Below are positions 29,729-62,679 of a DNA stretch of 64,000 bases, piece after piece (the stretch's first letter is position 1; each line of letters opens with the position of its first letter). The position numbers and the translations under genes are program-made. Below the pieces are notes generated by a model. It saw only the letters and a list, made by a program, of their open reading frames with translations. It had not been told where the DNA came from and did not search any database. The DNA is from Schmidtea polychroa (lineage: Eukaryota), in contig CM097885.1 in NCBI GenBank assembly GCA_044892525.1, positions 15,128,001 through 15,192,000 on the forward strand. The letters are read 5' to 3'.

Positions 29729-30151
29729 GTCTTTTCTACTATTCGAGATGCTGGTCAAGATCACGTGACTCCATTATCCATTACTACTTCATCACCACAA
29801 CTCTTCACTCACTTCGACATTACAGAACCGAATACAACACAAAAATCAACAGAACTCCCTTACCACTTGACTCAACATTTATTTGACGAAATACCTTTAT
29901 GACACCGATTATTACCGCCTATTGGGGTAGTTTTACACAACCTTCCTATTATTAGAAAATCAAAAAAAAATCAGACGACAGAAAGGCTACTCATTCAATC
30001 ACAATATCAAGATGTTTATACAAATATTACAAAGTCTATGGGGAAGTCCCAGCGAAAATCATGTCGAGATCAAAGAAATCTCTCGCGTCTTCTTCCCAGG
30101 TAGTGCTAGAGGTGGGCACTACTCGAAACGTAGGCGGTGATCGGACTGCTA

Positions 30152-34432: not shown

Positions 34433-35102
34433 CTAAAGATCAAGTCGTTTGAGCGTCATTTATAATTTCGAGTGCGAGTTTTATAATATTATCAATCCTT
34501 CTACTTGGTAATGACCCACAAAATCCATATCGCTCGTCAACATTCATGCCCATTCATCCTCTAGCATTCAAGTTGATCCACTCAATTCATTTACTACGAC
34601 TTCCACTTTAGGTTTAATTTTCGGATTTGACCATTTCCGTCTAATGTACTTATATTAATTTATTACGGTTGGTTCTATCATCTTTATTTTTCATCTCTTA
34701 TTAATTATATTTTATTCCTCTTATATTTTATTCCTTTATTAGATTATGTGTGCGTTGTATTAAAAAAGAGTAGTTCAGTGTTACTGGTGTCTCTTGGTGC
34801 TGCATTAAGCCTGAACAAATTTATAAAAGAATCGAAATGTATTAATTTAAATTTTTATTATAAATTAAAATTTGATTATTTTAAATCGTGCGCCGTAAAT
34901 GTCGTCATGGCGACGCCTAGCTGCGTGCCGTTGTGTTAGTAAAAAAAAAAAAAAAAAAATCAAATTTTATTTTAATCAATTGACGGCACTTGGCTAGGAA
35001 GGGGAGAACTTCTCACCCTTAGAGTTCTGTAGCTTTTAATTCAATGACCGATGGATACCAGAGTTATAAACTCAGGTATCAGAACGTGGGTTTCCAAATG
35101 GG

Positions 35103-36197: not shown

Positions 36198-38798
36198 TTA
36201 CCAAGAGACAAAGAAAATTGTAGAGGGGTGATATATAATAACCATAGAATACAAATAAATAAAAGATGCTTTGGCTACAAAAAGATAAATATATAAGTAT
36301 AATTTATTTTTATAAATATGTTGACGATATATGTGGTAGCTGCTATTGATTGCAGCTACGCAAGCTTTTTTGGCTAGTTCCTTTATTTCATTATTGGATA
36401 GGCCGATAATTTTAAGTATCGAGTCATTATTTTTGTCCCATGAACCAAGGGTGCCAACTACCAGGGCATGTAGAGTGTGTGGGCATTTATGGAGTCTACC
36501 TATTTCCTCTCCTAGTTCCTTAAATTTGTAATAGTTATTTCTCCTAGAGTTGTCGTAGTTTTCTCTGGTGTCGAAAGGAACCTTAATGTCTAAGATATGG
36601 ATAGATTTGTTACGCTTAGATTTTAGAAGAAGATCGGGCTTAAGGGTGGAATTGGTACCTTCAGGTACTTTCTCTATGTCTACTTCATAGTTAATAGATA
36701 TAAGGAAGTTTGCCACAGTTTCTAGGACAATATCATGCTTATTTCGTCTTGCATTAATACGTGCTTGGCAATGATTAAAGATGTGTGCAGGTGTTTCTGG
36801 GTGGGCATGGCAGTGCCGGCAGAGTATAGATTTATTAGTCTTTAGGCGGTGTGGTGAGTAGTTCAGTTTTAGAAGGTTGTTGCGTGCGCGAATAAGAAAG
36901 AGGAATTGGGCATCAGGAAGGATGTCACTTTTAAAGAAATAGTCGGCGATGTTGCTTTCGCTAATTGCCTTTGCCATATAGCCCTGGCATTTCATCGCAC
37001 ACCAACGTTCAGCATGAATAAGGCCAATAATAGAGTGTAGTTCAGCTGAGGTTCTATCCACATTAACGAGGGAGAAGTAATTGATACGACTCTTATATTT
37101 TATTTCAAGCTGTAGAAGGTCCTCAAGCATTACAATTTTGGTAGATATACCGTAGTTATGAAGCAGACGGCGGGCGGATTTTTTAAATTTTGAGAAGATG
37201 GAGAAAGTTGGGTAGCTTTTAGAGAGTTGGCCATTCAGCCAGGACAGTGCCACATTTAAATCTCCTTGTCCCCTAGCCTCGATAAGTTCAGCAGTAATGA
37301 GAGTCTTAAAGTTAAGATCGCTAGAGTTTAAAGCCCTGATAAGTTGTACGATGCTTTGAATAAGGTATTCGTCAATGGATGATACAAGTCCAAGACCACC
37401 AAGCTTGCAAGCTGCATATAAGAAGTTGTCGTTCAGCTGCATTATCCTATCGCCAATGGATCTTTTAATACCCTGTTTTATTTGCAGGTCGAATCCATAT
37501 TGTTGTATTTCAGAGTTACGAAGGATGTTGCGCGGAGAGTCAAGGATGTTGTGGTTAATGACACAATTTCTAAAAGTAAAGTTCAAGCGGGAGTGGATGA
37601 ATACTTTAAAGGCATTAATTTTTTGCGAAGGATGTAGATGAGAGTTGAGAATTTTGTTTGTGTCTATAATAGCGGAGTCTAGTCTTTCTTTGATACAGTG
37701 TTTAGTTTTATGGGAGAAGTCAACCCCAAGATATCTGTACATATTAGAGTCGTCAATTTTTGGAAGGGTTTCGCCATAGAGTAGAATAGGTTGGTAGTTG
37801 CAGTCGTGATCAACATGAAAGTATCCGGATTTCGAGGGTTTAAAGCGTAGGTTGACCTTTGTTGCAAGGGAGACAGTGAGAGATAGGGCCGACTTGATAT
37901 TGGAGTAGGAATCAGATATAAGCACTATATCATCGGCATACGCAAGAATTCTAATGTTGTGATTATGAAAGAGAAACGGGTGAGTTTGTAAGACATTGCG
38001 GAGTATGAAGTCAATGGATAGACAGAACAGAGTCATGGACAAGGGGCAGCCTTGTTTCACACCTTTATAAATTGGTGTATAATCAGATTTTTCTCCCTCA
38101 CATTCAAAGTAAGTTTGTACATTGTTGTACATGTCCTGAAGAAGAGCAATAGTGGTGTTGTGAAGACCCATCTCTGAGAGAGTGTACCAGATGAGTTCAT
38201 GTGGAATAGATCCGAAGGCATCCGCTATATCTAGCCAAATGATATGTAGGTCGTTTTTCTTGCGATAGGAAGAGTCTTTTATGAGATGGAGGATAAGATT
38301 GTGTTCAGCACATCCATCCGGTGCGCAGATAGCTTTTTGGTTAGGTGTTAGGAGATTTCCGTTACTGATCCATTCAAGAAGACGGTTATTCATTAGTGAG
38401 GCAAATATCCTATAGGCAGTGTTCATAATTGAGATCGGTCTCCAGGAGTTAGCCTCGTGGCTTATTTCAGCTTTACCAGATTTAAGAATGAGTCGGGTAC
38501 GAAAGGATTTCCAGCATACTGGAGATCTGGAATTACGAAGGATGTTGTTACATAAGGCAAGGATGAGCTCAAAGTTAGGAGATATCTTTCTCCAATCGCT
38601 AAGAGATATTTTATCAGTACCAGGGGCAGTATTGTCGAGTTGGCAGAAGGTGCTTTTAATGTCATCAGTGTCAAAGGGAGTGATGGTGAAGGATTCAGAG
38701 AGTGTTGGGTACTGATAGTTAAGGTCAAAGGTGCAATCAGAGGTTTTGCTAGCGAAGAGTTTTAGGATACTATCCATATTTGGTGTGTGAGTTTTCAC
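36198..38798 (-). CDS. Reverse transcriptase + restriction-like endonuclease
   Basis: WRPISI, GCAEHN, GVKQGCPLS, LAYADD, YLG; CRHC...HIFNHC zinc knuckle; KPDL...ILDIKVPF. Confidence 0.95.
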   Translation of the reverse strand: MKTHTPNMDSILKLFASKTSDCTFDLNYQYPTLSESFTITPFDTDDIKSTFCQLDNTAPGTDKISLSDWRKISPNFELILALCNNILRNSRSPVCWKSFRTRLILKSGKAEISHEANSWRPISIMNTAYRIFASLMNNRLLEWISNGNLLTPNQKAICAPDGCAEHNLILHLIKDSSYRKKNDLHIIWLDIADAFGSIPHELIWYTLSEMGLHNTTIALLQDMYNNVQTYFECEGEKSDYTPIYKGVKQGCPLSMTLFCLSIDFILRNVLQTHPFLFHNHNIRILAYADDIVLISDSYSNIKSALSLTVSLATKVNLRFKPSKSGYFHVDHDCNYQPILLYGETLPKIDDSNMYRYLGVDFSHKTKHCIKERLDSAIIDTNKILNSHLHPSQKINAFKVFIHSRLNFTFRNCVINHNILDSPRNILRNSEIQQYGFDLQIKQGIKRSIGDRIMQLNDNFLYAACKLGGLGLVSSIDEYLIQSIVQLIRALNSSDLNFKTLITAELIEARGQGDLNVALSWLNGQLSKSYPTFSIFSKFKKSARRLLHNYGISTKIVMLEDLLQLEIKYKSRINYFSLVNVDRTSAELHSIIGLIHAERWCAMKCQGYMAKAISESNIADYFFKSDILPDAQFLFLIRARNNLLKLNYSPHRLKTNKSILCRHCHAHPETPAHIFNHCQARINARRNKHDIVLETVANFLISINYEVDIEKVPEGTNSTLKPDLLLKSKRNKSIHILDIKVPFDTRENYDNSRRNNYYKFKELGEEIGRLHKCPHTLHALVVGTLGSWDKNNDSILKIIGLSNNEIKELAKKACVAAINSSYHIYRQHIYKNKLYLYIYLFVAKASFIYLYSMVIIYHPSTIFFVSW

Positions 38799-38806
38799 TT
38801 CATTAT

Positions 38807-39568
38807 TTAAATTTTGGAGATTTCCTCTTTAGGGGCAAATTTATATTTTTGTCTCTTGGTAAAGACCAGTTCTTTACTAACCTTATAATTTTTATGAATT
38901 ATGTCCGCTGCTTTCTTTGTGATGTATTTATGAGGATTAATGCTTCCATTAATTCTCTCAATCTCACTTAAAGCAGCATCGCACTCTATTAGATTATTGT
39001 TAAGATTAATAATTAGACAATTGATAAATGGTCGGAATCTCCGCACATCATCAATTGGCAGTTTGCAATAATTATAATTATTTATAGTAGTTTTAATATT
39101 ATTTATCATATTGGGTATATTAGGACAAGTTAATTTTTCACGTTTAATAAGGCATTCGATAAAGTGACATATATAGAAGGCAGAGTCAGTAGGTATGAAG
39201 CAGCGAGGGTAATCGGGGTTTTGAAGTTCAATTTTGACAGGGCTAACAATTTTTTGGAGATCAAGAATGGTTTCGAGAATATTTTGAGCTAGAAAGAGGT
39301 GAGTAGAAAGGCCATCATCCAGAAGCGGGTCAATGAGGACGGCAAGTCTACGGTGTTTGTCGAGTAGAAAAAAGAACCAGTTGTCCTTACCATCAGACAT
39401 GGGCATGATAATCTCATTCCATTGAGCAAATTCAGAGAATGGAAAGGTGGCAAAGAAAGTTACATAGTTATGCTGGATAAGTGCATTTCCTATGAAAGGG
39501 TCCACAAAGATAGAGGAGTTTTTCAAGGCATTTGAAAAGATGTATGCCTTGATTGCGTGTTGGGACCA
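38807..39568 (-). pseudogene. Ulp1-like cysteine protease domain with altered catalytic residues
   Basis: WSQHAIKAYI...IIMPM..DNWFFFLLD...VLIDPL...PTDSAFYICHF follows the Ulp1 layout; His>Asn, Cys>Ser. Confidence 0.6.
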
Positions 39569-42500
39569 TCATGTCGACTCTTTCTCAACATTATTACCAA
39601 AAATAAGGGTATCAGGAAGAGGTCGTTTGACAATTTCACTTTCAGAGAAGGTAGCCTCAAATTCTTGCGACTCAAGTATAGGGCGTAGGTTGTTCACATT
39701 ATCGGGGGAACTATCCATTACTTGGGAGATCACAGGCGGAGTGGGGATATTGCCCGGATACACGTAAGGTTCAGGGTGGTTTTCGAGAATATGTTGTCGG
39801 ACATGGTGATGAGGGATCCATGATCCGCAGAAGCAGTATACCTCCTCGTCAGGATAAAAGATAAGTTTTTTATGCTTGACCTTTATATGGTTAATAATGG
39901 TCATAAGAGGGGTGTCAATGTCGAAGGTGATTTTACATTTTTTACGATTTTTGCTATAGTTGAAGCAGGTAAGGTTATTGGAGGGTGATATCCGTATTTC
40001 AGCGCGGCTCATATATTCAAGATCACATTGGTCTATGTGTTGAAAATGGACAATGTGATTATAGATTTGTTTGAAGGTTATAGGATTTGGCGCGTATTTA
40101 TTCTCACCGGGGGCTCTACATTGAATGCAATCAATAAGTGTGTTTTCGTCAATTTTTAATCTATGAAAGTCCCATGCGTGTTTAAAGATTTTTTTACGAT
40201 TATGGACAGAAATAGGACTGCATAGGGTTGTCTTGCATTTCAATCTGCATTCAATTTTACCCCTACCATTAAGTTTGAAAAATATTTTGTTGTCTAGTTC
40301 ACTCTCATCTGCAGTTTTTGGGATGAAGACATTGCGTGTGTGTTTGGCTAGTGTAATGGGTCTGAGATAATTAGGAGATGGGCCAGGGATATTAGTCGCA
40401 AACACTTGTATTTTTTTATTAAATACTTCCATTTGTGATTGTATTCTTAATGCCTCTTGGATTTCGTTGCATTCAGATTCAGAAGGAGTAGGTGCGGTGA
40501 TTTTAGGTGTACTGCTAAGCTCAATAGCGTTGGTAGTTTTAGATTGAGTAAGTTCAGGCGTATTATGAAGAGAGGCAGTTGTCATAGGATGTAGGTCAGT
40601 GTTGTTGTCGGGAGAGGAAGAGGCTGTGGGCTGGAGAGGTGGTTCTTGGTCGATAGAGGCTATACTGCTGCTCGATAGATTCACATCATCTATGTCCGAG
40701 TTAAAAAGATCATTGTTTGGCTGGGGATTTACAAGAGATTGAGAAGGGTTATGAGGAGTTTGAGAATTAGACTCATCCATTGGAAGGGGGTCAATGGTGT
40801 CATCAAGGTCACAGCTGTAGTGTGAAGTGTCAAGAATGTAATCAGAGCAAGAGGAGGACGAGTGGTTAGGCGAGAGATCAGAGTCATTGTCAATAGTATC
40901 ATTTAATGGAGATCGTTTAACATGGGGAAGGGCAATGAGGGAATCATCAGTATTGTTCTCATAATTATTAATTTTATTTTTATTTTTATAAATAGAGTAA
41001 AGGGTTGTGTATTTACCCTTACGTATGATTTTTTTAACAAAACACGATTTTATTACTTTATTATTGTTATCGTTATAAGTTGGGGGAAGGTTTTTAAGAT
41101 CCTTGGGCTTATGGATGAAGTCATTGGGAATAGGCTCAGAATAATGACGTTTCATTGAAGTTCCAAGGTTGTTATTTGAAGGATTTACAGGTATAGTTGG
41201 GATATTTGAAGAGTTAGCTAAGTAATTGGGCTTGTTTAGAGAAGTAAGAAAGGTATCAGTAGCTTGGGAATTTGCTGGTTGTGTTCCAGTTGAGTGTTCT
41301 AAGGTAGGCGAAAGACTAACAGGATTTCCACTGAAGGTGACTGTCTTTGCAGATGCGAGGCGGCCGTAGGCCTGCGAGCTGCGTGTTTTCTCGTGTTCCG
41401 AAGGAACACGAGAAAAATTTTTAAGAGAAAAAGCATGGTTAAATAAATGATATTTAAACAAAGATTTATCTTTGTTTAATATAGATAATTTATTTAAGCT
41501 AATAAAATCAGAAATATTATTAAATATAATGCTAATTAATTCGTTAGGGAGTCTTTCGGTGGAGTTTTGAATTTTATTATAATCAATAATTATTTTTTTA
41601 ATAACATATTTAATTTTGTTCTTAAAAAATTTTTCATAATTATAATTAGTTAGGTCATTTTCATAATTATTATTTTTATCTTTTAGATTTAGATTTTCAA
41701 CATTTAAATTGGAAGTATATTTAGAATTATAATTAGTTTGGACATTTTCATTATTATTTTTATCCTTTAGAATTAAATTTTTATCATTTAAATTGAAAGT
41801 ATATTTAGAATTATAATTAGTTTGGTCGTTTTCATAATTATTATTTTTATCCTTTAGATTTAAATTTTCATTATTTAAATTGAAAGTATATTTAGAATTA
41901 GATTTAATTAAATTACAATTATTACAGTTTAATTTCAATTCATAGTTTTTAAAATTTAAATTAAAATTATGATTATCAAAAATTACATTACAATTTTTAC
42001 TATTTAAATTGCATTTACAATTATTACATATTAATTCGTGAATAGACTTTTTATGATTATAATCATTATAGAAATTTTGATTATAATTACCTTTATTTTT
42101 ATTTAGGATGTGAATCCTCCGAGCAGGGCAAAAGGCTTTCCAAGAAGTATCTCTGGTCGGGTCCGAGGATGCATTCTCTGGAGCAATAATATCATAACAA
42201 GGAGGAGAGATTCCGTATTTCTTCAGGATCTTCCTGGCAGGACAGAATCTGCTATCCATCACCTCACAGTCGTCTGGTTTCCTTGGAGCATCAAGATTCG
42301 ATACATCAGGGCAGGAGGCATAAGGTGATTCAAGGAATCGGATTTCATTATTTCTATAAGGAGGATTAGTAAATGTTGAAAGTAATTTATCCTTGATGCC
42401 ATTTCCCGGATTGGAGCTTCTTCCATTTCTGTTTGAAGGAGCTTTATCGGATCTAGAAAGGAGATTAGACTGTGATAAAATCAAATTTTTATTAATGATA

Positions 42501-42655
42501 TCTCCAGGATTGGAGTTTCTTCCATCAGTAAACGTATCGTCATGTTCAGAGTCCTCAGCCGATTTCTGCCCAGTGCTATGAATGATATATAGCAGTAGTT
42601 CTGCTAAGCACTGGGTAACGGCGGGTAATAAGTATTTGAATAGATTGACTTGCAT
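39569..42655 (-). CDS. N-terminal region of the NeSL polyprotein: C2H2-like fingers, low-complexity linker, inserted Asn-rich segment
   Basis: 1028-aa ORF with four Cys/His clusters near its C-terminus; separated from the Ulp1-like part by a single in-frame TGA. Confidence 0.75.
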   Translation of the reverse strand: MQVNLFKYLLPAVTQCLAELLLYIIHSTGQKSAEDSEHDDTFTDGRNSNPGDIINKNLILSQSNLLSRSDKAPSNRNGRSSNPGNGIKDKLLSTFTNPPYRNNEIRFLESPYASCPDVSNLDAPRKPDDCEVMDSRFCPARKILKKYGISPPCYDIIAPENASSDPTRDTSWKAFCPARRIHILNKNKGNYNQNFYNDYNHKKSIHELICNNCKCNLNSKNCNVIFDNHNFNLNFKNYELKLNCNNCNLIKSNSKYTFNLNNENLNLKDKNNNYENDQTNYNSKYTFNLNDKNLILKDKNNNENVQTNYNSKYTSNLNVENLNLKDKNNNYENDLTNYNYEKFFKNKIKYVIKKIIIDYNKIQNSTERLPNELISIIFNNISDFISLNKLSILNKDKSLFKYHLFNHAFSLKNFSRVPSEHEKTRSSQAYGRLASAKTVTFSGNPVSLSPTLEHSTGTQPANSQATDTFLTSLNKPNYLANSSNIPTIPVNPSNNNLGTSMKRHYSEPIPNDFIHKPKDLKNLPPTYNDNNNKVIKSCFVKKIIRKGKYTTLYSIYKNKNKINNYENNTDDSLIALPHVKRSPLNDTIDNDSDLSPNHSSSSCSDYILDTSHYSCDLDDTIDPLPMDESNSQTPHNPSQSLVNPQPNNDLFNSDIDDVNLSSSSIASIDQEPPLQPTASSSPDNNTDLHPMTTASLHNTPELTQSKTTNAIELSSTPKITAPTPSESECNEIQEALRIQSQMEVFNKKIQVFATNIPGPSPNYLRPITLAKHTRNVFIPKTADESELDNKIFFKLNGRGKIECRLKCKTTLCSPISVHNRKKIFKHAWDFHRLKIDENTLIDCIQCRAPGENKYAPNPITFKQIYNHIVHFQHIDQCDLEYMSRAEIRISPSNNLTCFNYSKNRKKCKITFDIDTPLMTIINHIKVKHKKLIFYPDEEVYCFCGSWIPHHHVRQHILENHPEPYVYPGNIPTPPVISQVMDSSPDNVNNLRPILESQEFEATFSESEIVKRPLPDTLIFGNNVEKEST
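41640..41900. repeat. 84-87-bp tandem repeat x3 inside the ORF
   Basis: Encodes SKYTFNLNxxNLxLKDKNNNxENxxTNYN three times. Confidence 0.9.
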
Positions 42656-44452
42656 TTAAAAATTTTTAAGAGAAAAATCTGTTTGCAGATAGTCAGAAGA
42701 ATTAGTCGGAGCGGTGAATGAAAAATGGATTGCTATGAGGGCTTGGGTTAATTATTAATCTACCAGATAAAATTGATTCCAGAGTTAGATTTTCCTCTGC
42801 TATGTTGATTCGTGATAAGGACTGTCAACTCGTTCGCTCAACGGCCTCCACCCATAATCGATACACTAGATATCTTATCGACTGTCTGACTGTCTACTGC
42901 GACTAACTCTAATCTGAATGGAAATGAACAGATGATTACTCGAGATTACAGTTTCTTTCGGGCTTATGGTAAGTGTTTTAATCTATTATCAAGAAATGTT
43001 TACATTCATATCTAAGTCGAGCTATTATCGATGACAGTGGCTAGGCACCGGCCGATTATCAAGTCTATTCAGAACCAATAAAATCAAGATTATGGATTTA
43101 TTCGTTAGCGTCCTGGCGATGCAAATCTTAGAAAAGCTTCAATAATCATGACACCCAACGCGAACACCGTCTGAACCCCGCAAATAATGATCTCCTGACG
43201 GATATTTAGACAACCAATTTTTGCAATGTAAGAGGAAATCGTCTATCAATCAAAGCTCAATAAAGACGCGATTGGATATAGTGCTGATGATTTCTCAAAT
43301 CGTACTCCTCCTGGATTCAGTGGATTCATTTTCGGCTTCAAATTATGTAACTGCTAGTTTTCAATTGAAAATCTTTTCGACGACGAGAGTGGCTGATCTC
43401 ACTCGGTGAAAGAACCTCTGGCATCATATATTATCATTTCTCTCGGGGTTTCCTCACCCCTCATGACCCACCCAAGAACAGTACGCAATGCTGCCACCGC
43501 TCTTATACCGTCATGAAGGACGAATCGACCCAATTACTCTCAGAACAATAAATATAGCAAAAATCAGTTACGGATATCAATAAATAAATAAAATGAATAT
43601 TTACCTGGCGACCATGCCATTTGGGTTCCTGGTGTGATGAGTCTCAATTCCTCCACCGTTTCGTTGCTTATTTGTTCATCTTTCCGCATTTCACAAGCCT
43701 CCATCATCTTGGCTGATGTCCCCCACATTACTTATCTCTTCGATTTCGAAAAATTACTCGGATTCATATCTACAACTCATTTCCATCACACCAGAAGCTC
43801 CCAGAGGACATCGTCGCCAGCACCATGAAGAAAAAGCAATATGTTGTATGATAAATAAAATTTATTAATATTAAATTGTTAGTTTGAATATCATTTCAAA
43901 ATAAAATCTAAATACACATAAATAAAATAAATGATAACCCTTACCAAAATTCTTCCTTGAGGATGTCGAAAATTTGAATCAAACGGTATCTTAAAAATTT
44001 TCGCTAAAGCTAATGTCCTGGTTCTCTTAACTTAATTCACTGTCCGATCTGTCTAGATAAATTCGGTTCGATTCTGGTAAACGATCCCTGTAAATGATTT
44101 GTGAAGTTTTGTTCAAAGTGGTTCCGGTTAGTAGATTGAATGAGTATCGTCCCTGTAGTGTTTGGTTAAAAATCGGTTCCTGCAATCGTGGATTAAAAAG
44201 TGGTTCCTGAATGTCGTTCTGTAGAGTTTGGTTAAAAGTGGTTGTTCAAATTTAAAAATTTTACCTGTAGAGTTTGGTTAAAAGTGGTACTCTAGTAATT
44301 TTTCGCGTTTCTTATATACTATTTTTTATCCAATCAGGACTCGGTTAGTTTGTAATTTTATTATTTATTATTATTTTTATGTTTTTCATTGTAATATAAT
44401 GAATTTTAGTGACCTTATTTTATTTTTTATTATTATTTTATTATTTTCTTAA

Positions 44453-47040
44453 CCCTTAAATGCATGATGATGTATTTATACATCAGTGTATTTGTCCTTA
44501 AATAATTTCTAAACGGTAACTCAAACACAGTATATTTTGCTTTTATTAGGTGCTAAAAATATTTATCTTAGTTTCTGAACGCAAGCTGTCACAATATGGC
44601 AGTTAACTTTTTCAATTGTCAAAATTTGACAGCTTGGCGCAGCATTTTCGAATACGCACTTTGGCGGTCAAATTAAAATTTTATTTTAATGCATACTAAA
44701 TAGTATTATTACGCGATAAAAGTGATTGACGAGAGGATAGAGGTAAGCAGAACACGTTGCATTATTTTTTTTTAAATACAGTAACAGTTTTTGTAAATAT
44801 TAGCTGTACAATTGTGATGTAGAAATACATCAGTATGCAAAATCGGTTAAAAAAAAGTTTTACTGCAGGTATAATATATTTTTTTATTTTTGACTTATTT
44901 GTATACAGATACATACTATATTCATATGAATTTTATGATTATTTATCCAGAATGTCCCGTGAATTGGCAGACAAAGACATAGAACAACTTCTGGCAGCTT
45001 TAGAAGATGGAAATATTTCTGAGGATGGCTTGGAAGATGAAAGTGAAGATGAAGAAACCTTTTTCGCTAATGCAAGAGAAATAATTCAAGAGTTGGAAGA
45101 CGAGGATGCAGAGGACCATGAAGATCCTACCTATAGTGATCCACCACTAGTTCAAGATTTGCCTGGCCCATCAAGTCAAACTATTATTTCATTACCCATG
45201 CAAGAAGGTATTCAACAATATGTAGAGTTTGATAAAAGGAAACTCATTTGGAAAAAAGACAGTTTGTTGTTTGACGAATCGAAAATAATTCACCAACCAA
45301 ACACAACAGACTCTGCTATAACTGAACTTGATACACCATATAAATGTTTTTTGCACTACTTCACACCAGAGTTCCTTCAAAAAATTGTTGATAAAACTAA
45401 CTTATATGCAGTACAGAAAAACCCTTCAGTATCTTTCACTACTACTGTTGGGGAGTTAAAAAAATTCATAGGTATTCTTTTATTTATGTCAGTGGAGCAA
45501 TTCCCTAGTGTACGCTCATACTGGCATTCCAAGTTTGGGTACGATCCTGTAAAGAGCGCGATGCCTGTAAATCGGTTTGAGATGATTCGGAGCTACTTAC
45601 ATTTCAACGATAATAATAAACATCTTCCGCGAGACCATTCCGATCACGATCGCCTCCATAAGATTCGGCCTGTGATAGAACAGCTAAATACGACATTTTC
45701 ATCAGTTGCAATAGACCAACGACTTTCTATAGATGAACAGATGTGTTCCACTAAAATTGCACATTTCCTGAAGCAATATTTACCAAATAAGCCTCACAAA
45801 TGGGGCTATAAGCTTTTTGTTCTCTGTAATCTTATGGGATATGCTTACAGATTTGAGGTCTATTCTGGACAAGAAGAAAAAAAAGACAAACCAGCCCATG
45901 AACCTGATCTAGGAATAACAAATAACGTCGTTATACGTATGGCGAGAGCTATACCAAGGATGAACAATCATATAGTATTCTTCGATAATTTTTACACATC
46001 CCTGCCTTTAGTAAATTATTTGAATAAACAGGGTATACAATGTGTCGGAACTATTCAGCAAAACAGGCTACCGAATTGTCGACTCCCTGATAAAAAGGAA
46101 CTTATGAAAACTTCTGTTCCGAGAGGCACATATGAGGAACGCGTTTCCCATTCAGATGGAGTAGACTTTTCGGCCACTGCGCGGAAAGATAATAAAGTCG
46201 TCACTCTTTTATCGACTTACGTCGGCGCCGAGCCTGTTGGAAAAGTATCAAGATACGACAAGAAAGCTAAACAAAAAATTGACATCCCTTGCCCCAAAAT
46301 TGTGCAAGAGTACAACATGCATATGGGAGGAGTCGACCTAATGGACAGCTTTTTAGGACGCTATCGAATTCGAATAAAGAGCCGAAAATGGTATTTACGC
46401 TTGTTTTATCATCTACTGGACCTCACTACAATGAACTTATGGGTGCTTATGAAAAAAAATTTAATTGCTAAAGGTGTCACAAAAAAGCAGCTGCCTAATC
46501 TTGGGGAGTTTCGTAATTGTTTAGCTGACACACTGTGTAATATAGGTATGTCTGGAGGTAGTAAAAGAGGGCGCCCTAGTACTTCCTCTCTAGAACGCGA
46601 GCTTCAAATAAAAAGGCAAAAAGGTCCGCAACATCCACTCCCGTCAAAAGATGTACGCGTAGATAAATTCGAACATTGGCCCGTATTTGCCAATCGATTA
46701 CGGTGCAAGATGCCCAATTGTAAGGGCACCACACAATGGTCGTGTACCAAATGTAATATACCGCTGTGTCTAAATCAGAGAAACAACTGTTTCAAAGATT
46801 TTCATTCACTGCAGTAAGCCTAATTCGACGACAATCGTCCAATAGCACAGTACTTAGGCTACATTATTAATATTAACTGTAATGCATACTGATGTAGATC
46901 TACATCAGTAAGATTTTTTTATAAAAATATACTTTTTGGAAAATAAATATTTTTTTCTTTATTTTTCCCTTTATCTATGCTTAATTATTTATCTGTGTCA
47001 ATTTATAGTATTAAAAAAGGAAAAATCATGCATTTAAGGG
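44453..47040 (+). mobile_element. Complete piggyBac transposon
   Basis: TTAA 44449-44452 and 47041-47044; perfect 16-bp TIR CCCTTAAATGCATGAT. Confidence 0.98.
44835..46817 (+). CDS. piggyBac transposase, intact (likely start MSRELADK at 44952)
   Basis: DDD triad SIDEQM, FFDNFYTS, GGVDLMD; C-terminal Cys-rich domain RCKMPNC...CTKC...C...CFKDFH. Confidence 0.95.
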   Translation: MQNRLKKSFTAGIIYFFIFDLFVYRYILYSYEFYDYLSRMSRELADKDIEQLLAALEDGNISEDGLEDESEDEETFFANAREIIQELEDEDAEDHEDPTYSDPPLVQDLPGPSSQTIISLPMQEGIQQYVEFDKRKLIWKKDSLLFDESKIIHQPNTTDSAITELDTPYKCFLHYFTPEFLQKIVDKTNLYAVQKNPSVSFTTTVGELKKFIGILLFMSVEQFPSVRSYWHSKFGYDPVKSAMPVNRFEMIRSYLHFNDNNKHLPRDHSDHDRLHKIRPVIEQLNTTFSSVAIDQRLSIDEQMCSTKIAHFLKQYLPNKPHKWGYKLFVLCNLMGYAYRFEVYSGQEEKKDKPAHEPDLGITNNVVIRMARAIPRMNNHIVFFDNFYTSLPLVNYLNKQGIQCVGTIQQNRLPNCRLPDKKELMKTSVPRGTYEERVSHSDGVDFSATARKDNKVVTLLSTYVGAEPVGKVSRYDKKAKQKIDIPCPKIVQEYNMHMGGVDLMDSFLGRYRIRIKSRKWYLRLFYHLLDLTTMNLWVLMKKNLIAKGVTKKQLPNLGEFRNCLADTLCNIGMSGGSKRGRPSTSSLERELQIKRQKGPQHPLPSKDVRVDKFEHWPVFANRLRCKMPNCKGTTQWSCTKCNIPLCLNQRNNCFKDFHSLQ

Positions 47041-47955
47041 TTAATGTTTATTGTTTTTCTCTTATTTTTCTATAGATTTATTGTCGTTTTGTTGCGATAT
47101 AATTTTTTGTTTTAATTAGCTTACAAATTTATTCAGGAATTGTTTTATTTTTATTTTATTTCTTTACTTTCTTATTTATCTTTCTTAAATTTTTGCTATT
47201 CTATTTCCCCTTTATTTGTTATGCGCATTAGGTAGTTTCTTTTTTGTCTTATTTTTTAGTCTTAAGGGTTTTATTATTTTATTAATTATTCCTATTTCTT
47301 TTATTGGTGTTTTATTTGTTTCTTCCTATATATTACTGAGGTTTTCGGTAAAATCTATTTTTATCTTATTCTATTATTCCGTGGGATTCCTTTCTACCTT
47401 TGATTCACTTCTCGACATTCTCAAGACTCGGCCCAACAGGAACACTAACTTGTTGCATGACCAAATGTAGGTTTCCGCTAGAAGAAAGACATTATTTTTT
47501 AAAATATTAATATTTTAAAAAATTAATGCCTTTGTTCCAGCGGAGACCTGCTTTTTGATGAGTCATCAGAAATACCAAGGTCAATGTTTATAAAGTGATT
47601 GTGATTTTCAAAATCAACCAATCAACTTTAACATAAATTTAAATCAATAAAATAGATTAATTAATAAAATAAAACCTGGATAAGTGAAAGATCAGCCTAA
47701 AATACATATCAGAGACTTATATGAGCGTGATTTTCATATAGTTCATAATACATTTGAAAAGAGAATCAAGAAAGTCGACTTTAAAATTGTCAACCATTCT
47801 CCTTATTACAACAAAGGATATGGTTATTGATGCTGCGGAGTCATGGTTTGCAGAATAGGATTAGAAAAACCTTGTGACCAATGCATTAAATATATATAGT
47901 TGAAAAGTGATTATGTTATATAAAATGATATTATATATCAACATTATATATATAT

Positions 47956-53352: not shown

Positions 53353-53491
53353 CCGACGCATGAGCCCGTGGTGATGTTCCACGTTGGTGCTGCCCACACG
53401 GGTCGGAAGAGGTTAGCAGGTGAGCCTCTGCCTTAAAACTACTCCTAACCCCTTCTCGGTTCAGGTTCCTAGGCGCCTTGGAAGGACTTAC
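53353..53491 (-). ncRNA. Conserved two-hairpin cis RNA motif, copy D
   Basis: GGGGTTAG/CTAACCTC outer stem, ACCTG bulge; second hairpin with AGCACCAA bulge and CGTGG/CCACG. Confidence 0.65.
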
Positions 53492-54539
53492 CCATTTCCA
53501 TGCTCATACTCGGTCCAACCCTGGTCCAAGGGGTCGACCTTCATTTCATGGCATGTATTCAGTTAATAAATCAATCCATGCGTTTTACTCACCATTCTCA
53601 CAATTAAATCAACCAACATCAAGGAAATTATATTATTTGCATCACACGCTACAGGTTATTGAAGACAAAACATCTTACACTAATGTTTAATATAATATCG
53701 ACCAAAAACACTGATGAGTTGTCATGCACATAAGGATTGGTTAGTAAGCCTATTAGGAACAAGAGGTCGACACTGTCGTCACGTTAGGTCCTCAGAAGGC
53801 TTCTCCGTCGGCGAACACTTCGTCTATGTCTACGGGATATCGACGGTCCGCAAGATACTTGATTCCATCGGCCGGAACCACTCTAAATATTTCCTTGGCC
53901 GGAATCACATGGGAGGCTGAGATATCCTTAATAGTGGACTGGGCCACATCTACTATTGGAAATAACAAGATTCACTAAGAAACGATCAAATCTTCGCGTT
54001 GATGTTGGAATATATAACGATTTCCTCTGAGCTTTCCTATGCAATTTCTCTCTTTTACCGAGCTAGAAGGCTACTATTCCTCCATGGAAAAGTTGTCAAG
54101 ACATCATCGATCTCACTCGGCGAAGAAGCTCCTCTCGACTCGATCATTATTATCGACCAGATGTCCTCACCCCTCCTGACCCACCCAAGAGTGGCATACA
54201 TCTCTGTCACCACTCTTGGACCGTCAGGAAGGACGATTCTATCTCTACCCAACTCCCATCATAAATATATAGTGAACGATTATCAAAAAAAAATGAATTA
54301 CATGATTTGCTAGATGGATTTACCTATATAAAAAGATTATTTACCTGGCGACCACGCCGTCTGAATTTCGAACATGATGCCATATCGTAGTATCCATCCT
54401 ATTTTTACTGCTTCATTTCCAGTGAGGTCTCATTTATTCAGATCCTCAATTCAACGTCTTCACTGCTTATCGTTCATTCATAGGCATTTCCATTCATTCG
54501 AGTAAAGGATTATATATTAAACCGAATATCGAACCCACG

Positions 54540-55031
54540 TGCAATGAAAAAAAATGTTAAAATCGCTGTTCAGCAAATAGGATATAATATAATAAACCTT
54601 ACACAGAGTTCAACAGCCGAAGGAACAGCGGCAAATAGATCTGTCAGCAAGCGACCAAGATGTTATATTTGCCCTCGATCCGCTGATAAGAAAACAGGAA
54701 CAAGATGTTATGTTTGTAATCAGCCATCTTGCAAAACACATAAAAACCGTTTGCATAAATTGTATCAACGAAGAAGTAATGGATTCGCTCGAAGAAGAAA
54801 ACAATGAAATTATGTCAGACGATGCGTCTGGTTAATTTTTTTTATGTAATATAATATAATTTAAATTATCTTAATCTTATATATTTTGAATAAAAAAGTT
54901 TTTTTCATTAATTAATAAAAATAACATGACTATTTTTTAACAAAAAGATCATAAAAAGCATTAAAATATATATGGGGTCGGGTTGACCCCATGCACAGAC
55001 TATGGAAAATTTACTATGCACAGACAGAAGG
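54540..55031 (+). mobile_element. piggyBac 3' remnant (Cys-rich domain + terminus)
   Basis: RCYICPRSADKKT..RCYVC...C..H; subterminal GGGGTCGGGTTGACCCC; ends AAGG|TTAA. Confidence 0.75.
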
Positions 55032-58000
55032 TTAAAAATAAAGCATTTTAGTTAATTCTCTTTACACATATATATATATATATATATATATATCAATCAT
55101 AAACATAAGAATTCATTCATACTATTTACTACAATGATTTCTTCGAGAGTATTGAAACCAAGATCTATGAATTTTTCCCTTTTTCCTAGTAAATCGTATG
55201 GTTAGTTTTGCTGAAATTTCGATCGCTGTCTATTGAATGCTATATAAATGTTTGATGAATAGTTCTGGAAGGTTTTCGTATATCCTAGTCTGGTAGGTTC
55301 TGTTAGTAAATTGAATGAATATCGTCCCTGTAGAGTATAGCGGTTAAATGGTACTTAAAAATAATGGAATTTTACCTGTAGAATATAGCGGTTAAATGGT
55401 ACTCTACAGATATTCTTCATTGCTTATATACTATTTTTCGTCCAATCAGGACGCGACTAGTGTGTAATATTATTGTTTATTATTTTTATGTTTTTTAATG
55501 TAATATGTTAGATTTTAGCGACTTCTCTTATTTTTATTATTATTTTATTTATTTTCCTATTTTTTATTATCTTTCTCCTGTTTTTCTTATGACTTTATTG
55601 TTATTCGGTTATAATATAATTTTTTGTTTTAATTACTTCATATAAATATTTGAAAATGGTTTTATTTCTATTTTATTCCTAATATCTTGTTTATTTTTCT
55701 TAAATTTATTATTTTATTTCCTTCCGCTATCATAGGTGTTAGGTAATTTTCTTTTTCGTCTTACTTTTCGTCTTATGAACTTTATTATTTTATTATTTAT
55801 ATTTATTCCCTTTATTTTCTTTTATTGTTGTCTAATTTAATTGTTCTTATAGTTTCTGTGTTTTTTTTCGGGAAATTTATTTTATCCTTTTTTATTTATC
55901 CTTAACCTGGTTCTCAATACTCTCGAAGCTTGGCCCAACACATAAAAGAAACAATCAACTAAGAAAATAAGAATTAAAACAAAAAATAAAATTAAGAAAA
56001 TTTAAATAGGAAAATATAATGACGCATAAAATAACGAAAAATGCAATAAATAATCAGGAAATTAATAAAACAAATAAAAAATATAATAAAAATAAAGAAA
56101 ATTAAGGAAAATAACAAAAAAAAACAGGAAAAAGTAAACTAAATTAGAAAATAAGCGGTACTCAATACTGATTGGTCCGCACAAATGAAAAATTACTATA
56201 TAAACTGGCATTAAACCCTCACAATTACAGTTAACAAAAAATTCTACTTAGGTAAGGAACAATGTAAATTATCAACAGTTAACAAAAAATTCTACTTAGG
56301 TATTACCAGCAATAGACAGGAACTCCAGTTACGAATCATCGACAAATTTCGAATAATATTCAATCAGATCCAGTACATTTCGACTCAGCCTTCAAATCTA
56401 TCGAACAATTTGGTAAGGGAATTTTTTAATTATTACTACTTTCGTATCGTAATGTTAATTAGATAAAATTAATTTGTAATGATACTATTTCTTTTCATTT
56501 GATCTAGAAAATTTTTGGTAAATGTCGTTTCTATGCTTAATAAACGTATTATTTATAAACGGTTATGATTTATTTTATAATGGAATGATTAACAAATTTT
56601 ATGATTTCAACTTGCTGAGGAACGTGGAGTTGAGACTTTTCATACCATGGTGTGAGGGGCCTTCGGGTGCTCAGCCGGTGGGTATGAAATGTTTCAATCA
56701 CGCAGCTGATTCGGGCCGAAATGTGGGGGCTTCCTCACGGGTCCGTCGCTGAAGGTGCGACTAAATTATATGAAAAGATTACTCTAGAAAGGTGGTAGTT
56801 ATACAGTGATTAGAAGAGTAGATGTATAGAAGAGTTTTTGAGAATTCGCACAGTGATTGAGGGGGTCACACTATTAATTCGTAGGGTCGTCTTTGTGAAC
56901 TTTATAACATCTCGGTTATCTGAAAAATCCATACAACGATTCCTCGAATTCGTCTAAAAATTGGTGTCATCTCATAGCATACATCACCTAAAGGCATAAT
57001 CCTACGAAAAATGATTCCTATAACTTTCATTTTCCAGAACTCCGTAAACGTATTTTATCATATATCTCTTTCGCGCGTGCTTGATTTTGATAAATCTGTC
57101 AAGGTCGTATGTTAAAGTAAATTCCAAAAATTAACTAATTCTAAGAAGTACAAAAATACCACTAAATCCAATTTAACGAAATTTATTTCCCACAAAGAAA
57201 AACAGTTCAGCACAATATCTACCCAATATATCGAATATATAATGTCTGAGACTTAATTACGAACATTTACGATAATCCATCCAATTTAGAAAATTCCAAT
57301 CCGGATAGAGCACAGCGAGTAGTTGAAAATTAGCTTTTTTCTTTATTGTCTTCTATCGATCATCGAGATATTCCGTAAAAGTCCAACTATTGATGCTAAC
57401 GATGAGAAAAATTCCATATTGAGAGATAGCAGCAGTAGTAATGGAAAATTTCTATAACCGATCGTGCGGTGAGAGTCAGATAACATACGAATGACGAAAC
57501 GTCTGGGAAAATAACATCAAATGAGATAAAATCACAAAATTCATTTTGAGTAACGATCGGCAGCACGCAAGTTCACATTAGATAGGGCAGAGCAGAATAC
57601 ACACAGTAGGAGTAATTCCACTCAAGCACCAGACAATTTCGCCATGAAAGTCACAATTACACACACCGATTCACAGCGACAAATCAACATACAAGCATAT
57701 TAGTAGTCCCAGCATACCGCTGATGATAAATGGATAAACGAATTCACACCCACTACACGCTATGACTGCTATCGGTAAAGATCCAGCTATTAAAATCTCC
57801 TTCACATGCCATTCAGTGTTATCTCGAGTAGATGAGAACTAACCTAGTAGATTTGATCAGTAAACGTTAGATTCCTAGCACTAGGCAGATGTTCTGATTT
57901 CTTCAACATTTATACAAAGTTTATCAAACACGTCTGGTTAATTTCACTATTATCCTCTTCACATTGAACTAACCACAATAGGTCGCTAAATTATGATGTA

Positions 58001-58567: not shown

Positions 58568-59230
58568 TTGCATATTCTATATCTCAATCTTACCTTTATA
58601 GCTATCATGATGCCAACTGCGAAGCCCGTGTTACGTCCATGCTTCTCCTGCTCGGATAAAAACGCAATCATCAAGGACCTACAGACCCAGATTGGGCGAT
58701 ATAAAAAGAAAATAGATGAATTAGAGGGGACATGGTTTAGTCCCGCTCAAATGAAAGAAACACAGAAAAAGCTATACCGTAGCGAACATTGTCGGGACGC
58801 TCTAATCTCCGAGAGCCGTTCCAAAAGAAGTTTGATAAAGGAGCAGTCCGAAGCGCTGCACAAAGTACACCTGCAGGCAGCGACCACTAGGAAAATAGTC
58901 AGAATTCCCATCAATGAAGCCGACAATCTCTTTCCGGCACACCACGACACTTCTTCAAAGTCGTCGCCTCCTTCTAAGAAGTCTTGCCAAGAGTGCATAG
59001 AGACTCAGCTCTCGCCCAAACAACCAGACGTCATTTTCGTGGGAACAAGTAAAGCGCCACCTACTATCGCTTCTACATCCACTATACCTCCAACTAATCC
59101 AACGACATCCAAGCCAAAGCGTCGGCAATTATCAAGAGCCGAATGTAAAAGGAAGCAGCGGGAGCGAATAACCACCAAGCAGAACACACAACCAACGGAA
59201 ATTGTAGCCAGGCATATGCATCTCACCTTT
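58568..59230 (+). CDS. CxxC/coiled-coil LTR ORF, copy E, truncated by the viral insertion (likely start at MMPTAK)
   Basis: RPCFSCSDKN...EGTWFSPAQMKE...EHCRD...CQEC...KRRQLSRAE. Confidence 0.75.
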
Positions 59231-59262
59231 ATAAATACGAGGTTTCATTTTATAATTTCAGA

Positions 59263-60165
59263 ATGACTGATAATATTCTAAATACTTTTGTAGAAAAAAT
59301 TAAATTGTACTTAAACAAACCAAACGAAACTTACCCAGAATATATTTTACCTGAATATTTCAATAGATTTTCAGACACACCGAAGGCATATATCAAAGAA
59401 GATAGTGAAATTTATTCACTATACAAACACTATTATAACGAATTTCATCCGCTACTGATTGGTCCACACTCGGTCAAATTAGCATTCGTATTAGATTCAT
59501 TTGCTGGTAAGTTTAGTTTATATGAATATTTTATTATTTAAATATTAGATTTAGATTTTCAAAACGACATATTAGAATTATGGGATCTAGTAATCATGAA
59601 AAGGACGATGAGGGTCAATCAAATACCAATCTCTCCAATGATGGACGAAGTCATGAGAGGAAACGAAGGAGACATTCTTCTCGAAGACATAAACGAACTC
59701 ATCACAAACGACATTCCAGCATACAAGAAATCTCTAGCGACAGTCAAGAGCGGTCAAGTAGTATATCTACCGTACTGTCTGGCACATCTGTGTCCGATAT
59801 GCGAACTCCTTCGAAGACTAGTTCGATACCTAAAATCAAGCGACCTGCTAAGCACGTTTCCCGCAAACATTCGAGCAGGAGACACAATGATTCTCAGCAT
59901 CGTGATATACCAGCTATCAAAGATGTTACTGAGTTGGTTTCAGATAATAAAGCTCAAAATAATCATCCGGAACGAGCAAGAAGATTTAATTCCTTCAAAT
60001 TTCAAGTATCTGTTAACAAATATCGATCTTTGGAGCCGGAGCTTAAAAAGCTCATGGAGGACAAATCCTTCACAAGATTCGTTACAGGTCAAGAAGAGGA
60101 AGGTGATAATGGATATCACCATATGCAAATGTATTGGGAGGTATTATTTATTTTATTCAATTTAG
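59263..60165 (+). CDS. Spliced accessory ORF (exon 59263-59506, exon 59555-60165) overprinting Rep
   Basis: G|GTAAGT donor at 59507 and TTAG acceptor at 59554 (or 59548) join ORF 59263 in frame to ORF 59596. Confidence 0.6.
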
Positions 60166-60999
60166 ATATTAATGGAATAAAATTAATAATTACAGATTTA
60201 CAACAATATGTCAGTATATGCCTTTAGGGCAAAGACGGATATTCCCTTTGTCAGAGGAGTCGCCGGAGTCGAGCGTCAATCCGCTATCGAATATGCAACA
60301 AAACCTGAGTCTCGAGTTACAGGAGGACTATCTGTAAACATAGGAACTCAAAGTAAATTCAATTGTGCTTCTAATACAGATTACTTCAAACAAGCTCTAA
60401 ATTCTGCCTCGATGAAAATAGGATTAGAAATATTAATGCAGCACGAAGCATTCCATTACACAACAAAACGAAAAACAATAATGGAAACTTTCGTAAATAA
60501 ATTCGGACAATCAACTATGCCAAATTTTAATGACAATTTCATGATTGACAAAATAAATTTACTTGACTGGAAGAGCCATATTTTTGTTGGAGAATCTGGC
60601 ATTGGTAAAACAAACTTTGCCTTGTCACACTTCAAGAATCCTGTTCATTGCAAGCATCTCCAAATGCTTAACAGAATATCCGATAATGTAGATAAATGTG
60701 ACGGTGTAGTTTTTGACGATCTATATTTTAATAAAACAAGAATAGAAGAATTTCTTTCATTGGTAGATTGTGCATATGAAAATGTCATAAATATCAAGTA
60801 TTCGGTAGCTGTTGTTCCAAAGGGATTACCCAGAATATTTTGTATAAACGATTTGGACCTATTTTACCCAGAATGCATTTCTCCAACAATTATGGAAGCT
60901 GTACATAGAAGAATAAAAATACATCATTTCCGAGGCAGGATATTTAGAGAATACAAATCTGAACAAGTAAAAATTTTGTTATATTATTTTTTAAATTAA
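59580..60999 (+). CDS. rep: Rolling-circle Rep (HUH endonuclease + SF3 helicase), exons 59580-60140 and 60196-60999
   Basis: Motif I-like FKFQVSVN, motif II HHMQMY, motif III YATK, Walker A GESGIGKT, Walker B VVFDD, motif C RIFCIN, Arg finger AVHRR; a 55-nt GT-AG phase-0 intron joins the halves. Confidence 0.85.
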
Positions 61000-61171
61000 T
61001 TATTAGACAATGAAACATCCATATCTGATACCGAGCCAATGTCCCAACCAAAGTGTCGATTGCTCAGTATCCAGTGCAAATCATGTATGAAGTTCATGCG
61101 AATTTACTTGGGAGTGTGCAATAATAGTTTTTAATGTTTAATGTTTTATAATAATAAATGTTTATAAACAG

Positions 61172-61840
61172 TTAAAAGAAATTCTTTATTTTATCAAAAA
61201 TATCATACTTAACATCATTCAATACATTTATATCTTCAAATACATTTATATGAGTATTAAATTCGTATGCCTTTTCTACAACAATATATAGGGAACGATT
61301 TTTAAGAGCTTGTTCATGTTCAGAGGCATATTTCCATATAGGATGATTATTGGATATTATACATGGGCAATTACTTAGTTCAATTTTTGAATCACCTTTA
61401 CGAGAAACTTTTAGAAAAATATTACCTTCACATAATAACTTTAATAAATTAACATTTTTGAAATCGCAATATATTTCTTCTCCAATGATAATTTCTTTTC
61501 CGACACAATCATCGAAACAAAATTCACTTTGAGTTTGTGCACCAGTAAAAAATCCATGTTTAAGAGTCCCACGACAAATTGCAGTAAATAATGTTTTTCC
61601 ACCATTACTTGCACCTTCTAATATAATCGTCTTGGTCTTTCCGGCTTGAGACGATAAGATTGTATATATCCCAAGAAGACGACGAATATATTTTTCATTT
61701 TCTTTAGGGATAATGTGACGATTTTCAGAAATAAGTTTATTAATTTGTCGATTGTGATCGCTGTTAAAATGGAAATTATTGTTATTAATAAAAGCTTCCA
61801 TAAAAGTTGATAATTCATTGTATAACAATAGCTTATTCAT
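61172..61840 (-). CDS. Stand-alone parvovirus NS1/papillomavirus E1-like SF3 helicase domain
   Basis: Walker A GASNGGKT, FCFDDC...IIIGEE (Walker B), KLLCEG...VSRK (B'), PCIISNN (C), ALKNR; no nuclease domain. Confidence 0.85.
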   Translation of the reverse strand: MNKLLLYNELSTFMEAFINNNNFHFNSDHNRQINKLISENRHIIPKENEKYIRRLLGIYTILSSQAGKTKTIILEGASNGGKTLFTAICRGTLKHGFFTGAQTQSEFCFDDCVGKEIIIGEEIYCDFKNVNLLKLLCEGNIFLKVSRKGDSKIELSNCPCIISNNHPIWKYASEHEQALKNRSLYIVVEKAYEFNTHINVFEDINVLNDVKYDIFDKIKNFF

Positions 61841-62034
61841 TAGACAATGAAAGATAATTGTAATATGTGTGTATAAATATTATTGATTATTTGTGTTTTA
61901 TGACTCATCTTAAAAATATTATAGTAAAGTAAAGGCATTTATTACTATGCCATTCTTGGATAACCCATCTGCCTGTACTTTACTATATATATTTTAATAA
62001 ACTCCCACGCAGTCATGTGTTTTGCGGTGTGCTT

Positions 62035-62173
62035 CTCTCATAGACTTGGTAAGAGAGGGGTGTCGGGGGGCCCCTATATCTATAGCACGCCATGGCGTGC
62101 TTATTAATAAACCATGGTTTATTATGAGATATAGGGGCCCCCCGACACCCCCCTCTTACCAAATCTATGAGAG
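62035..62173. repeat. T-shaped terminal hairpin (inverted repeat with two internal palindromes)
   Basis: 47-bp arms 62035-62081 and 62127-62173 (2 mismatches); palindromes GCACGCCATGGCGTGC 62085-62100 and TAATAAACCATGGTTTATTA 62105-62124. Confidence 0.95.
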
Positions 62174-62537
62174 TGACTTGGGAGGAGAATGCCTCTGAGA
62201 TTTTCGACTTAGAGGAGTTGCTAGCAGATACGGAGTGTTAGAAATAAGAATGCTCTCGTGGGGTAACTCTATCATTAGGAAAATAGTCGAACTAAATATC
62301 ATCGTGTTTTTCTGTCATTGTTTTCTCTCATCTAGATATTCCTGTTGTATATAAATCATCGATGTTGTGTATGTTTGATGCTACAACAAATAATTTTATG
62401 TCTTTACCTCATTTAGTTTGTAAAGGATTTAGTATGACTGTAACAAAGAGGGTTGAAGGTTCCTCGAGAATTCTAGGAGTATTAGTCAATTGTATCCCAA
62501 CCAGAGGTAGGAAAGTGAATTTATAATTCGGATAGAC

Positions 62538-62679
62538 GTAAGTCCTTCTATCGGCGGTCGAAAGCGGTAAGTCGAGGCCTCAGTAAGGAGTAGTCCTAAG
62601 GTAGGGGCTCACCTGCTTACTGGTGTCTCGCCGGCATGGTACAGTTCCAACGTGGAGCAATTCACGGGTACCATGTTGG
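62538..62679 (+). ncRNA. Conserved two-hairpin cis RNA motif, copy in unit E
   Basis: CAGTAAG/CTTACTG stem with ACCTG bulge; CCGGCATGGTAC/GTACCATGTTGG stem, AGTTCCAA bulge, CGTGGA-GCAA-TTCACG. Confidence 0.65.

Follow-up and report, generated by a model that had tools for sequence, protein, structure and literature searches.

Within a 64,000-nucleotide stretch of the Schmidtea polychroa genome (assembly GCA_044892525.1, contig CM097885.1, positions 15,128,001 to 15,192,000 of the forward strand; hereafter the window, numbered from its first letter), a T-shaped DNA hairpin lies near genes for a Rep protein of the type known from circular Rep-encoding single-stranded (CRESS) DNA viruses and for a helicase of the parvoviral kind. 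The hairpin is a genuine DNA feature and forms the right edge of a ~2.97-kb insertion (~59210–62173) within one copy of a four-member gene family. We favor the interpretation, with a probability of roughly 0.55, that this hairpin serves in cis as the telomere, or terminal structure, of a small virus-like Rep–helicase element of the planarian PEVE/PIVE kind, which would have integrated into one copy of a repeated gene that belongs to the host or to a transposon. With one end intact inside a gene, the locus cleanly exemplifies the integration of a small DNA virus-like element.

The hairpin and the boundaries of the insertion

The hairpin comprises 139 bases (62035–62173), in which two arms of 47 nt each enclose a spacer of 45 nt. 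The arms are 96% complementary with two mismatches, and the G+C content of the stem is 55% compared to about 32% across the window. These values confirm the initial annotation, which had described a GC-rich 47-bp stem with two mismatches. The same annotation had placed two perfect palindromes of 16 and 20 bp, both centered on CCATGG, inside this stem. The centers, the perfection and the 20-nt length were all recovered, but the first palindrome measures 18 nt instead of 16. The hairpin is composed of the following parts, none of which is assigned to a strand:

62035–62173: whole T-shaped terminal palindrome (sequence, inverted-repeat search, DNA folding of both strands)
62035–62081: left arm of the 47-bp stem (inverted-repeat search)
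62127–62173: right arm of the 47-bp stem (inverted-repeat search)
62084–62101: inner palindrome 1, 18 nt, perfect, centered on CCATGG, folding as a 7-bp arm with a 4-nt loop
62105–62124: inner palindrome 2, 20 nt, perfect, centered on CCATGG, folding as an 8-bp arm with a 4-nt loop

Folding of the single-stranded hairpin with DNA parameters, a check that the initial annotation had proposed, returned a three-way junction at −63 kcal/mol. Shuffled versions of the sequence folded at −19 ± 3 kcal/mol (z = −14), and not one of 200 shuffles was as stable. The minus strand folds to the same shape. This outcome supports the earlier description of the hairpin as a T-shaped structure like those of adeno-associated virus (AAV) and densoviruses. 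The nearest run of N is more than 26 kb away. A search of the 64 kb with up to three mismatches allowed found no second copy or fragment of the arms, inspection of the sequence revealed no target-site duplication at the flanks of the hairpin or of the insertion, and no tandem tetranucleotide binding repeats could be seen by eye in the stem. Two 9-mers that recur within and just inboard of the hairpin, as well as a GACTTGG heptamer shared by the left arm and the sequence immediately beyond the right arm, were set aside because they appear at chance level.

The boundaries of the insertion emerged from comparison with an uninterrupted paralog. The open reading frame (ORF) at 58568–59266 encodes 232 amino acids and is one of four members of a gene family within the window. 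We compared the pieces of the interrupted copy (copy B) separately with a second copy (copy A):

58568–59209, plus strand: N-terminal part of the interrupted ORF232-family gene, copy B (paralog comparison)
59210–62173, no strand: whole insertion (comparison with the uninterrupted paralog; left bound ± ~25 nt, right bound 0–11 nt)
62174–62241, plus strand: C-terminal part of the interrupted gene, copy B, with a conserved acidic tail (paralog comparison)
30036–30796, minus strand: paralog copy A, passing through the insertion site without the element and with one frame change of its own (alignment)

The N-terminal parts of the two copies share 56% amino acid identity, and the match ends at ~59210. 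It resumes with the tail at 62174–62176, that is, at the foot of the stem. Copy A is colinear with copy B on either side of the insertion and, after its own frame change, reaches the acidic tail. Beyond the stop codon, both copies continue into a 78%-identical noncoding block (~290 nt downstream in copy B, ~300 nt in copy A). The insertion site thus holds ~2.97 kb in copy B versus 48 nt in copy A, and the genes and the hairpin are both missing from the latter. The earlier claim that the element ends exactly at the base of the stem is therefore correct as to the position of the edge, but the uninterrupted paralog defines this position with a precision of only 0–11 nt.

A short complementarity spans the right junction:

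62003–62016, no strand: inboard stretch complementary to 62174–62184 (pairing search; suggestive only)
62174–62184, no strand: 11 nt beyond the stem that also lie in the resumed host reading frame (pairing and paralog frame)

The two stretches pair over 6 + 5 bp with a 3-nt bulge, and the pairing spans an 18-nt one-sided unpaired bubble next to the stem. The probability of such a pairing is ~0.005 by shuffling and 0.035 against random pairs of stretches from the window. It could be due to chance, to a microhomology exploited for joining (which would shift the true end outward by up to 11 nt), or to the trace of an inverted duplication. A host origin of the right arm itself is unsupported, since its likeness to the paralog is no better than that of a control arm at the DNA level (P = 0.36) and insignificant at the protein level (P = 0.12).

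The interrupted gene family encodes coiled-coil proteins of ~230 amino acids with Ser/Thr/Pro-rich stretches and without a Pfam match; two of the four copies have an acidic C-terminal tail. The copies are located at 58568–59266, 30036–30796 (minus strand), ~34029–34438 (minus strand) and 23659–23901 plus 26114–26469 (plus strand). One copy is split by the Rep–helicase element and another by ~2.2 kb containing a hAT-like ORF. The conserved noncoding block ~300 nt after the family stop codon occupies 62534–62678 and 29594–29732, with a partial match at 53412–53449.

Genes of the insertion and their relatives

The insertion contains a Rep gene and a gene for a superfamily 3 (SF3) helicase in convergent orientation, two ORFs without a known family, and a second stem-loop:

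59263–59541, plus strand: ORF of 92 amino acids with a TATA-like box upstream, no known family (ORF list, Pfam)
59580–60999, plus strand: CRESS/circovirus-type Rep gene in two overlapping frames (profile search, motif alignment)
59596–60165, plus strand: ORF of 189 amino acids in another frame, overlapping the Rep gene at its 5′ part, without a known family (ORF list, Pfam)
61172–61840, minus strand: intact ORF of 222 amino acids for a stand-alone SF3 helicase of the parvovirus NS1/AAV Rep40 type (Pfam, PDB search, model)
61913–61994, plus strand: second stem-loop with a ~26-bp stem and a 32-nt loop beginning with TTTATTACT (inverted-repeat search, fold z = −5.5)

The Rep protein combines a long basic Ser/Arg-rich N-terminal extension with HUH motifs I–III, Walker A and B, and motif C. 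Motifs I and II are encoded in one frame, while motif III, Walker A, Walker B and motif C follow in a second, overlapping frame. Apart from this single change of frame the gene is unbroken. The frame junction resembles a short intron and possibly is one, but an intron at this position is predicted by no tool and is not common to relatives. A profile search retrieved 70 relatives, most of them with PF02407 and located on contigs of mostly 1–5 kb, one of which is named Cressdnaviricota. Together with the aligned motifs, this search bears out the earlier statement that the hairpin is paired with a CRESS-type Rep. Within the Rep gene, a 48-nt AT-rich stretch (60143–60190) is self-complementary (83%).

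The helicase gene adjoins the hairpin, with its start codon 195 nt inboard. The encoded protein consists of a helical bundle and an AAA+ core alone, without a nuclease domain. It matches the Pfam family Parvo_NS1 (6e-14) and, at the level of sequence, AAV Rep40/Rep68 (2e-4). A structural model built from nine relatives (pLDDT 88) finds AAV2 Rep40/Rep68 as top matches in the PDB, several of them in complex with terminal-repeat DNA (7.5e-9); B19V NS1 and papillomavirus E1 come next in rank. The initial annotation had regarded the hairpin geometry as mismatched with the gene content. This verdict needs to be softened: because the neighboring gene encodes a stand-alone SF3 helicase closest to AAV2 Rep40, a parvovirus-like hairpin is less at odds with the genes than had been claimed.

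A full scan of 1.8 billion representative proteins contained none with more than 38% identity to the helicase, and the top matches are helicase-only proteins of 222–244 amino acids. The helicase from the small segment of PEVE ranks third among the best 150 of 320 matches (6e-22, 31–32% identity) and is the sole named protein among ten of these 150 whose source was checked. A shortened relative of the helicase (46% identity over 109 amino acids) occurs at positions 467–835 of an AT-rich Logan contig (L017) with neither a Rep gene nor a hairpin nearby; it probably stems from a copy that integrated into another genome and decayed there.

In two independent Logan contigs (L001 and L002) the gene for one of these top-matching helicases lies directly downstream of a related Rep gene on the same strand. 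Because of this adjacency we consider Rep and helicase as one unit. PEVE reportedly has inverted repeats around two unique regions (Ul/Us layout) and encodes an E1-like helicase in addition to a circovirus-like Rep. Integrated relatives in Schmidtea mediterranea, listed in Repbase as PIVE, were found to group with PEVE from Girardia tigrina (Liu et al. 2011, PMC3198968). The combination of Rep with an NS1/E1-like helicase is therefore known from planarian virus-like elements, although it has remained obscure. Judged by its gene sequences, the element described here appears to belong with PEVE and PIVE. As far as we have checked, an AAV-like T-shaped end beside a Rep40-like helicase is undescribed for this group.

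The examined relatives differ in their content and ends. The small segment of PEVE (L003) is a 1911-bp linear record with terminal inverted repeats of 251 nt. Contig L002 and a further contig (P0009) carry an ORF of 460–530 amino acids that is absent from the insertion. Because the 528-residue version in L002 has no Pfam or PDB relative, labeling it as a capsid gene would be a guess. The noncoding parts of the insertion display no significant similarity to those of the relatives. In IMG/VR neither the stem sequence nor close relatives of either protein were found, and alignment scans returned only the small segment of PEVE, one ordinary small parvovirus-like contig (L006), and ordinary CRESS contigs without a second helicase. 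A gapped pattern for both CCATGG arms proved non-specific: it matched at least 120 stretches, and no fetched locus encodes a relative of either protein.

Several other characteristics of these contigs were recorded in passing. The Rep relatives in L001 (1–300) and L002 (1910–2335) likewise have long low-complexity N-terminal extensions. The Rep gene of L002 also occupies two frames, with the frame change placed differently relative to the motifs, and L001 has a splice-acceptor-like site upstream. The two contigs may likewise represent integrated or intron-bearing copies.

The surrounding window

The window consists of AT-rich, transposon-rich DNA of animal type, with piggyBac, hAT and LINE reverse transcriptase sequences. 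An apparently intact piggyBac-type transposase ORF of 660 amino acids (44815–46907; DDE_Tnp_1_7, 1e-83) lies between inverted repeats of 25 nt that are 92% complementary. On the minus strand, three consecutive long ORFs (36198–42655; 1028, 239 and 866 amino acids) include a LINE-type reverse transcriptase. Repeats of ~85 nt occupy 41566–41907, and nine 22-nt units, of which the middle ones are nearly perfect, form a tandem array at 10726–10989. Two dispersed repeat families with copies that are 73–79% identical occur at 43451–44451 and 54164–55559 (~11 kb apart) and at 47047–47375 and 55563–55896 (~8.5 kb apart). Both families appear in the same order and flank the piggyBac and hAT region.

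Interpretation of the terminal hairpin

The element shares features with several known systems but coincides with none of them. Like the inverted terminal repeat of AAV (Dependoparvovirus), its hairpin is terminal, has a similar size and forms a three-way junction, and AAV2 Rep40/Rep68, including complexes with terminal-repeat DNA, provides the best structural matches to its helicase. Unlike AAV, the element encodes its HUH nuclease on a separate CRESS-type Rep instead of an NS1-type domain fused to the helicase. Parvoviridae have linear genomes of 4–6 kb with hairpins at both ends and an NS1 in which HUH and SF3 domains are fused, whereas the element measures ~3 kb, has a left junction without hairpin, and encodes a 222-residue helicase without nuclease that starts only 195 nt from the palindrome. 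With no fused nuclease, no VP gene and a single hairpin, the element is not a parvovirus. Neither is it an ordinary CRESS virus. Its Rep resembles those of Cressdnaviricota (PF02407 clade) by the HUH motifs I–III, the SF3 helicase domain and a G-I-G-K-T..F-A-L-x-H-F-K-N-P block, but the relatives from this clade, which is known from circular genomes, are found on ~2-kb contigs without a second helicase. The long basic Rep N-terminus, the frame change, the additional helicase gene and the terminal hairpin distinguish the element from these relatives.

The element is also neither a bidnavirus nor a Helitron. Bidnaviridae are chimeric linear single-stranded DNA elements with a parvovirus-type NS1 helicase and terminal repeats, but the insertion contains no PolB gene, either as an ORF or as a Pfam match, and its Rep is CRESS-type. 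Helitrons and other HUH rolling-circle transposons resemble the element in that they combine an HUH Rep with a helicase, have asymmetric ends with a hairpin at one of them, and lack terminal inverted repeats and target-site duplications. In contrast to Helitrons, the element encodes SF3 and not Pif1-like helicases, its hairpin is far larger and located at the very end, and Helitron end motifs were not seen. The closest resemblance is to PEVE/PIVE, small elements in which a circovirus-like Rep is likewise accompanied by an NS1/E1-like helicase, and PIVE demonstrates that such elements integrate. The ends, inverted-repeat structures in both, may be a further likeness. Differences are apparent here as well: identity between the helicases amounts to only 31–32%, the small segment of PEVE (the only PEVE end compared) terminates in plain 251-nt repeats instead of a 139-nt T-shaped palindrome, and the element has just one terminal palindrome with Rep and helicase facing each other.

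If the hairpin is indeed a telomere, it may operate as follows. In single-stranded or nicked form the palindrome would fold back into the three-way junction, and the 3′ end of the folded hairpin could then prime strand synthesis. The HUH Rep would nick and rejoin DNA near the stem to resolve or terminate replication, and an SF3 helicase might melt the stem in the way that Rep40/Rep68 acts on the AAV terminal repeat. Whereas the anatomy of the locus is observed, we infer each of these steps, including hairpin-primed replication and integration by way of the terminus, by comparison with AAV.

A number of observations weigh against this reading. The hairpin occurs as a single copy in the window and has no matching partner on the left, where the junction contains no hairpin, no other structure (fold z = +1.4) and no resemblance to the right end. 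A capsid (VP) gene was not found, as the remaining ORFs of the insertion are without a Pfam match. No terminal hairpin is present in the relative contigs that we examined, although short-read contigs rarely retain such ends, and the 251-nt repeats of L003 do not self-fold (z = 0.2). Rep and helicase are convergent in the insertion but in tandem in L001 and L002, and the gene orders of L002 and P0009 would suit a circular genome. Finally, the complementarity at the right end reaches 11 nt beyond the stem, where the sequence is already homologous to the uninterrupted paralog. This could mean that the junction was made by microhomology or that the palindrome partly formed at integration. As a partner hairpin, a further copy in the window and a capsid gene are all missing, we can only infer what the hairpin does. 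Because the ~500-residue ORF of the relatives and a left terminal structure are both absent, the integrated copy is either a left-truncated integrant or a naturally one-ended, Helitron-style HUH element with a single hairpin.

These observations leave room for other explanations. The hairpin might be an independent foldback or miniature inverted-repeat transposable element (MITE) next to the Rep–helicase unit, either because one inserted beside the other or because the hairpin was a preferred landing site. Two inverted 47-nt arms around a short core, 139 nt in total, do have the dimensions of a MITE, transposon sequences abound in the window (piggyBac, hAT, LINE and several repeat families), and the hairpin was seen in no relative of the genes. 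Yet no target-site duplication flanks the hairpin, and no further copy or fragment occurs in 64 kb. Moreover, the genes and the hairpin are jointly absent from copy A and the host frame resumes at the base of the stem, while nested perfect palindromes represent a geometry of viral telomeres for which a MITE has no need. We regard this explanation as unlikely. Somewhat less credit can be given to the idea that the element is a CRESS-type circle that replicates from the stem-loop at 61913–61994, with the T-shaped hairpin serving as a Helitron-like terminator, a packaging signal or an insulator. In favor of this idea, the Rep is typical of the CRESS kind, and the stem-loop, which is significant and holds TATTAC in the loop as well as two GTAAA units in tandem in the stem, is a candidate origin of the CRESS type. 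The layouts of L002 and P0009 fit a circle, and asymmetric ends with one terminal hairpin and no target-site duplication are reminiscent of HUH transposons. What speaks against this idea is that the TTTATTAC octamer occurs at chance frequency (7 in the window versus 8.1 expected), that no comparable stem-loop is conserved in L001, L002 or L003, that a 32-nt loop on a 26-bp stem is atypical of a CRESS origin, and that Helitron end motifs are absent. As a conserved origin, the TATTAC stem-loop is thus backed neither by the relatives nor by motif frequency.

Alternatively, the palindrome or its outer stem might be a by-product of integration that arose by inverted duplication of junction or host sequence during break repair. 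In favor of such an event, complementarity extends 11 nt past the 47-bp stem into the resumed host frame (P ~0.005–0.035), and the host reading frame stays open through the right arm, which faintly resembles the paralog. This likeness is insignificant by the tests described above, and an inverted duplication would explain neither the inner CCATGG palindromes nor the presence of an 18-nt one-sided bubble next to arms that match at 96%. We therefore consider this origin improbable. An artefact of assembly or of chimeric reads is far less probable still. Long reads with missed adapters can yield palindromes, but such artefacts are long and perfect and lack a structured core. Because the arms of the hairpin differ at two positions and its 45-nt core contains two nested palindromes, an artefact of this kind is not a convincing source, and unique sequence continues on both sides in the proper host frame with no N run near.

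The reading that we prefer, a terminal structure of an integrated Rep–helicase element, raises a broader and more tentative proposal. The element might represent a flatworm-type lineage of single-stranded DNA elements with a CRESS-type Rep as initiator, a linear genome, an AAV-like T-shaped telomere and a separate Rep40-like helicase. We regard the existence of such a lineage as possible but doubtful. Parvoviruses are thought to have descended from CRESS-type ancestors by linearization and gain of hairpin ends. A CRESS-type nuclease, a parvovirus-style telomere and a Rep40-style helicase in one element would make this transition concrete. If real, the lineage would stand between rolling-circle CRESS viruses and rolling-hairpin parvoviruses, either as a living intermediate or as a second route that arose independently, and such an element could also enter the germline by way of its T-shaped end. 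The long-neglected PEVE/PIVE group would thereby gain a defined terminal structure.
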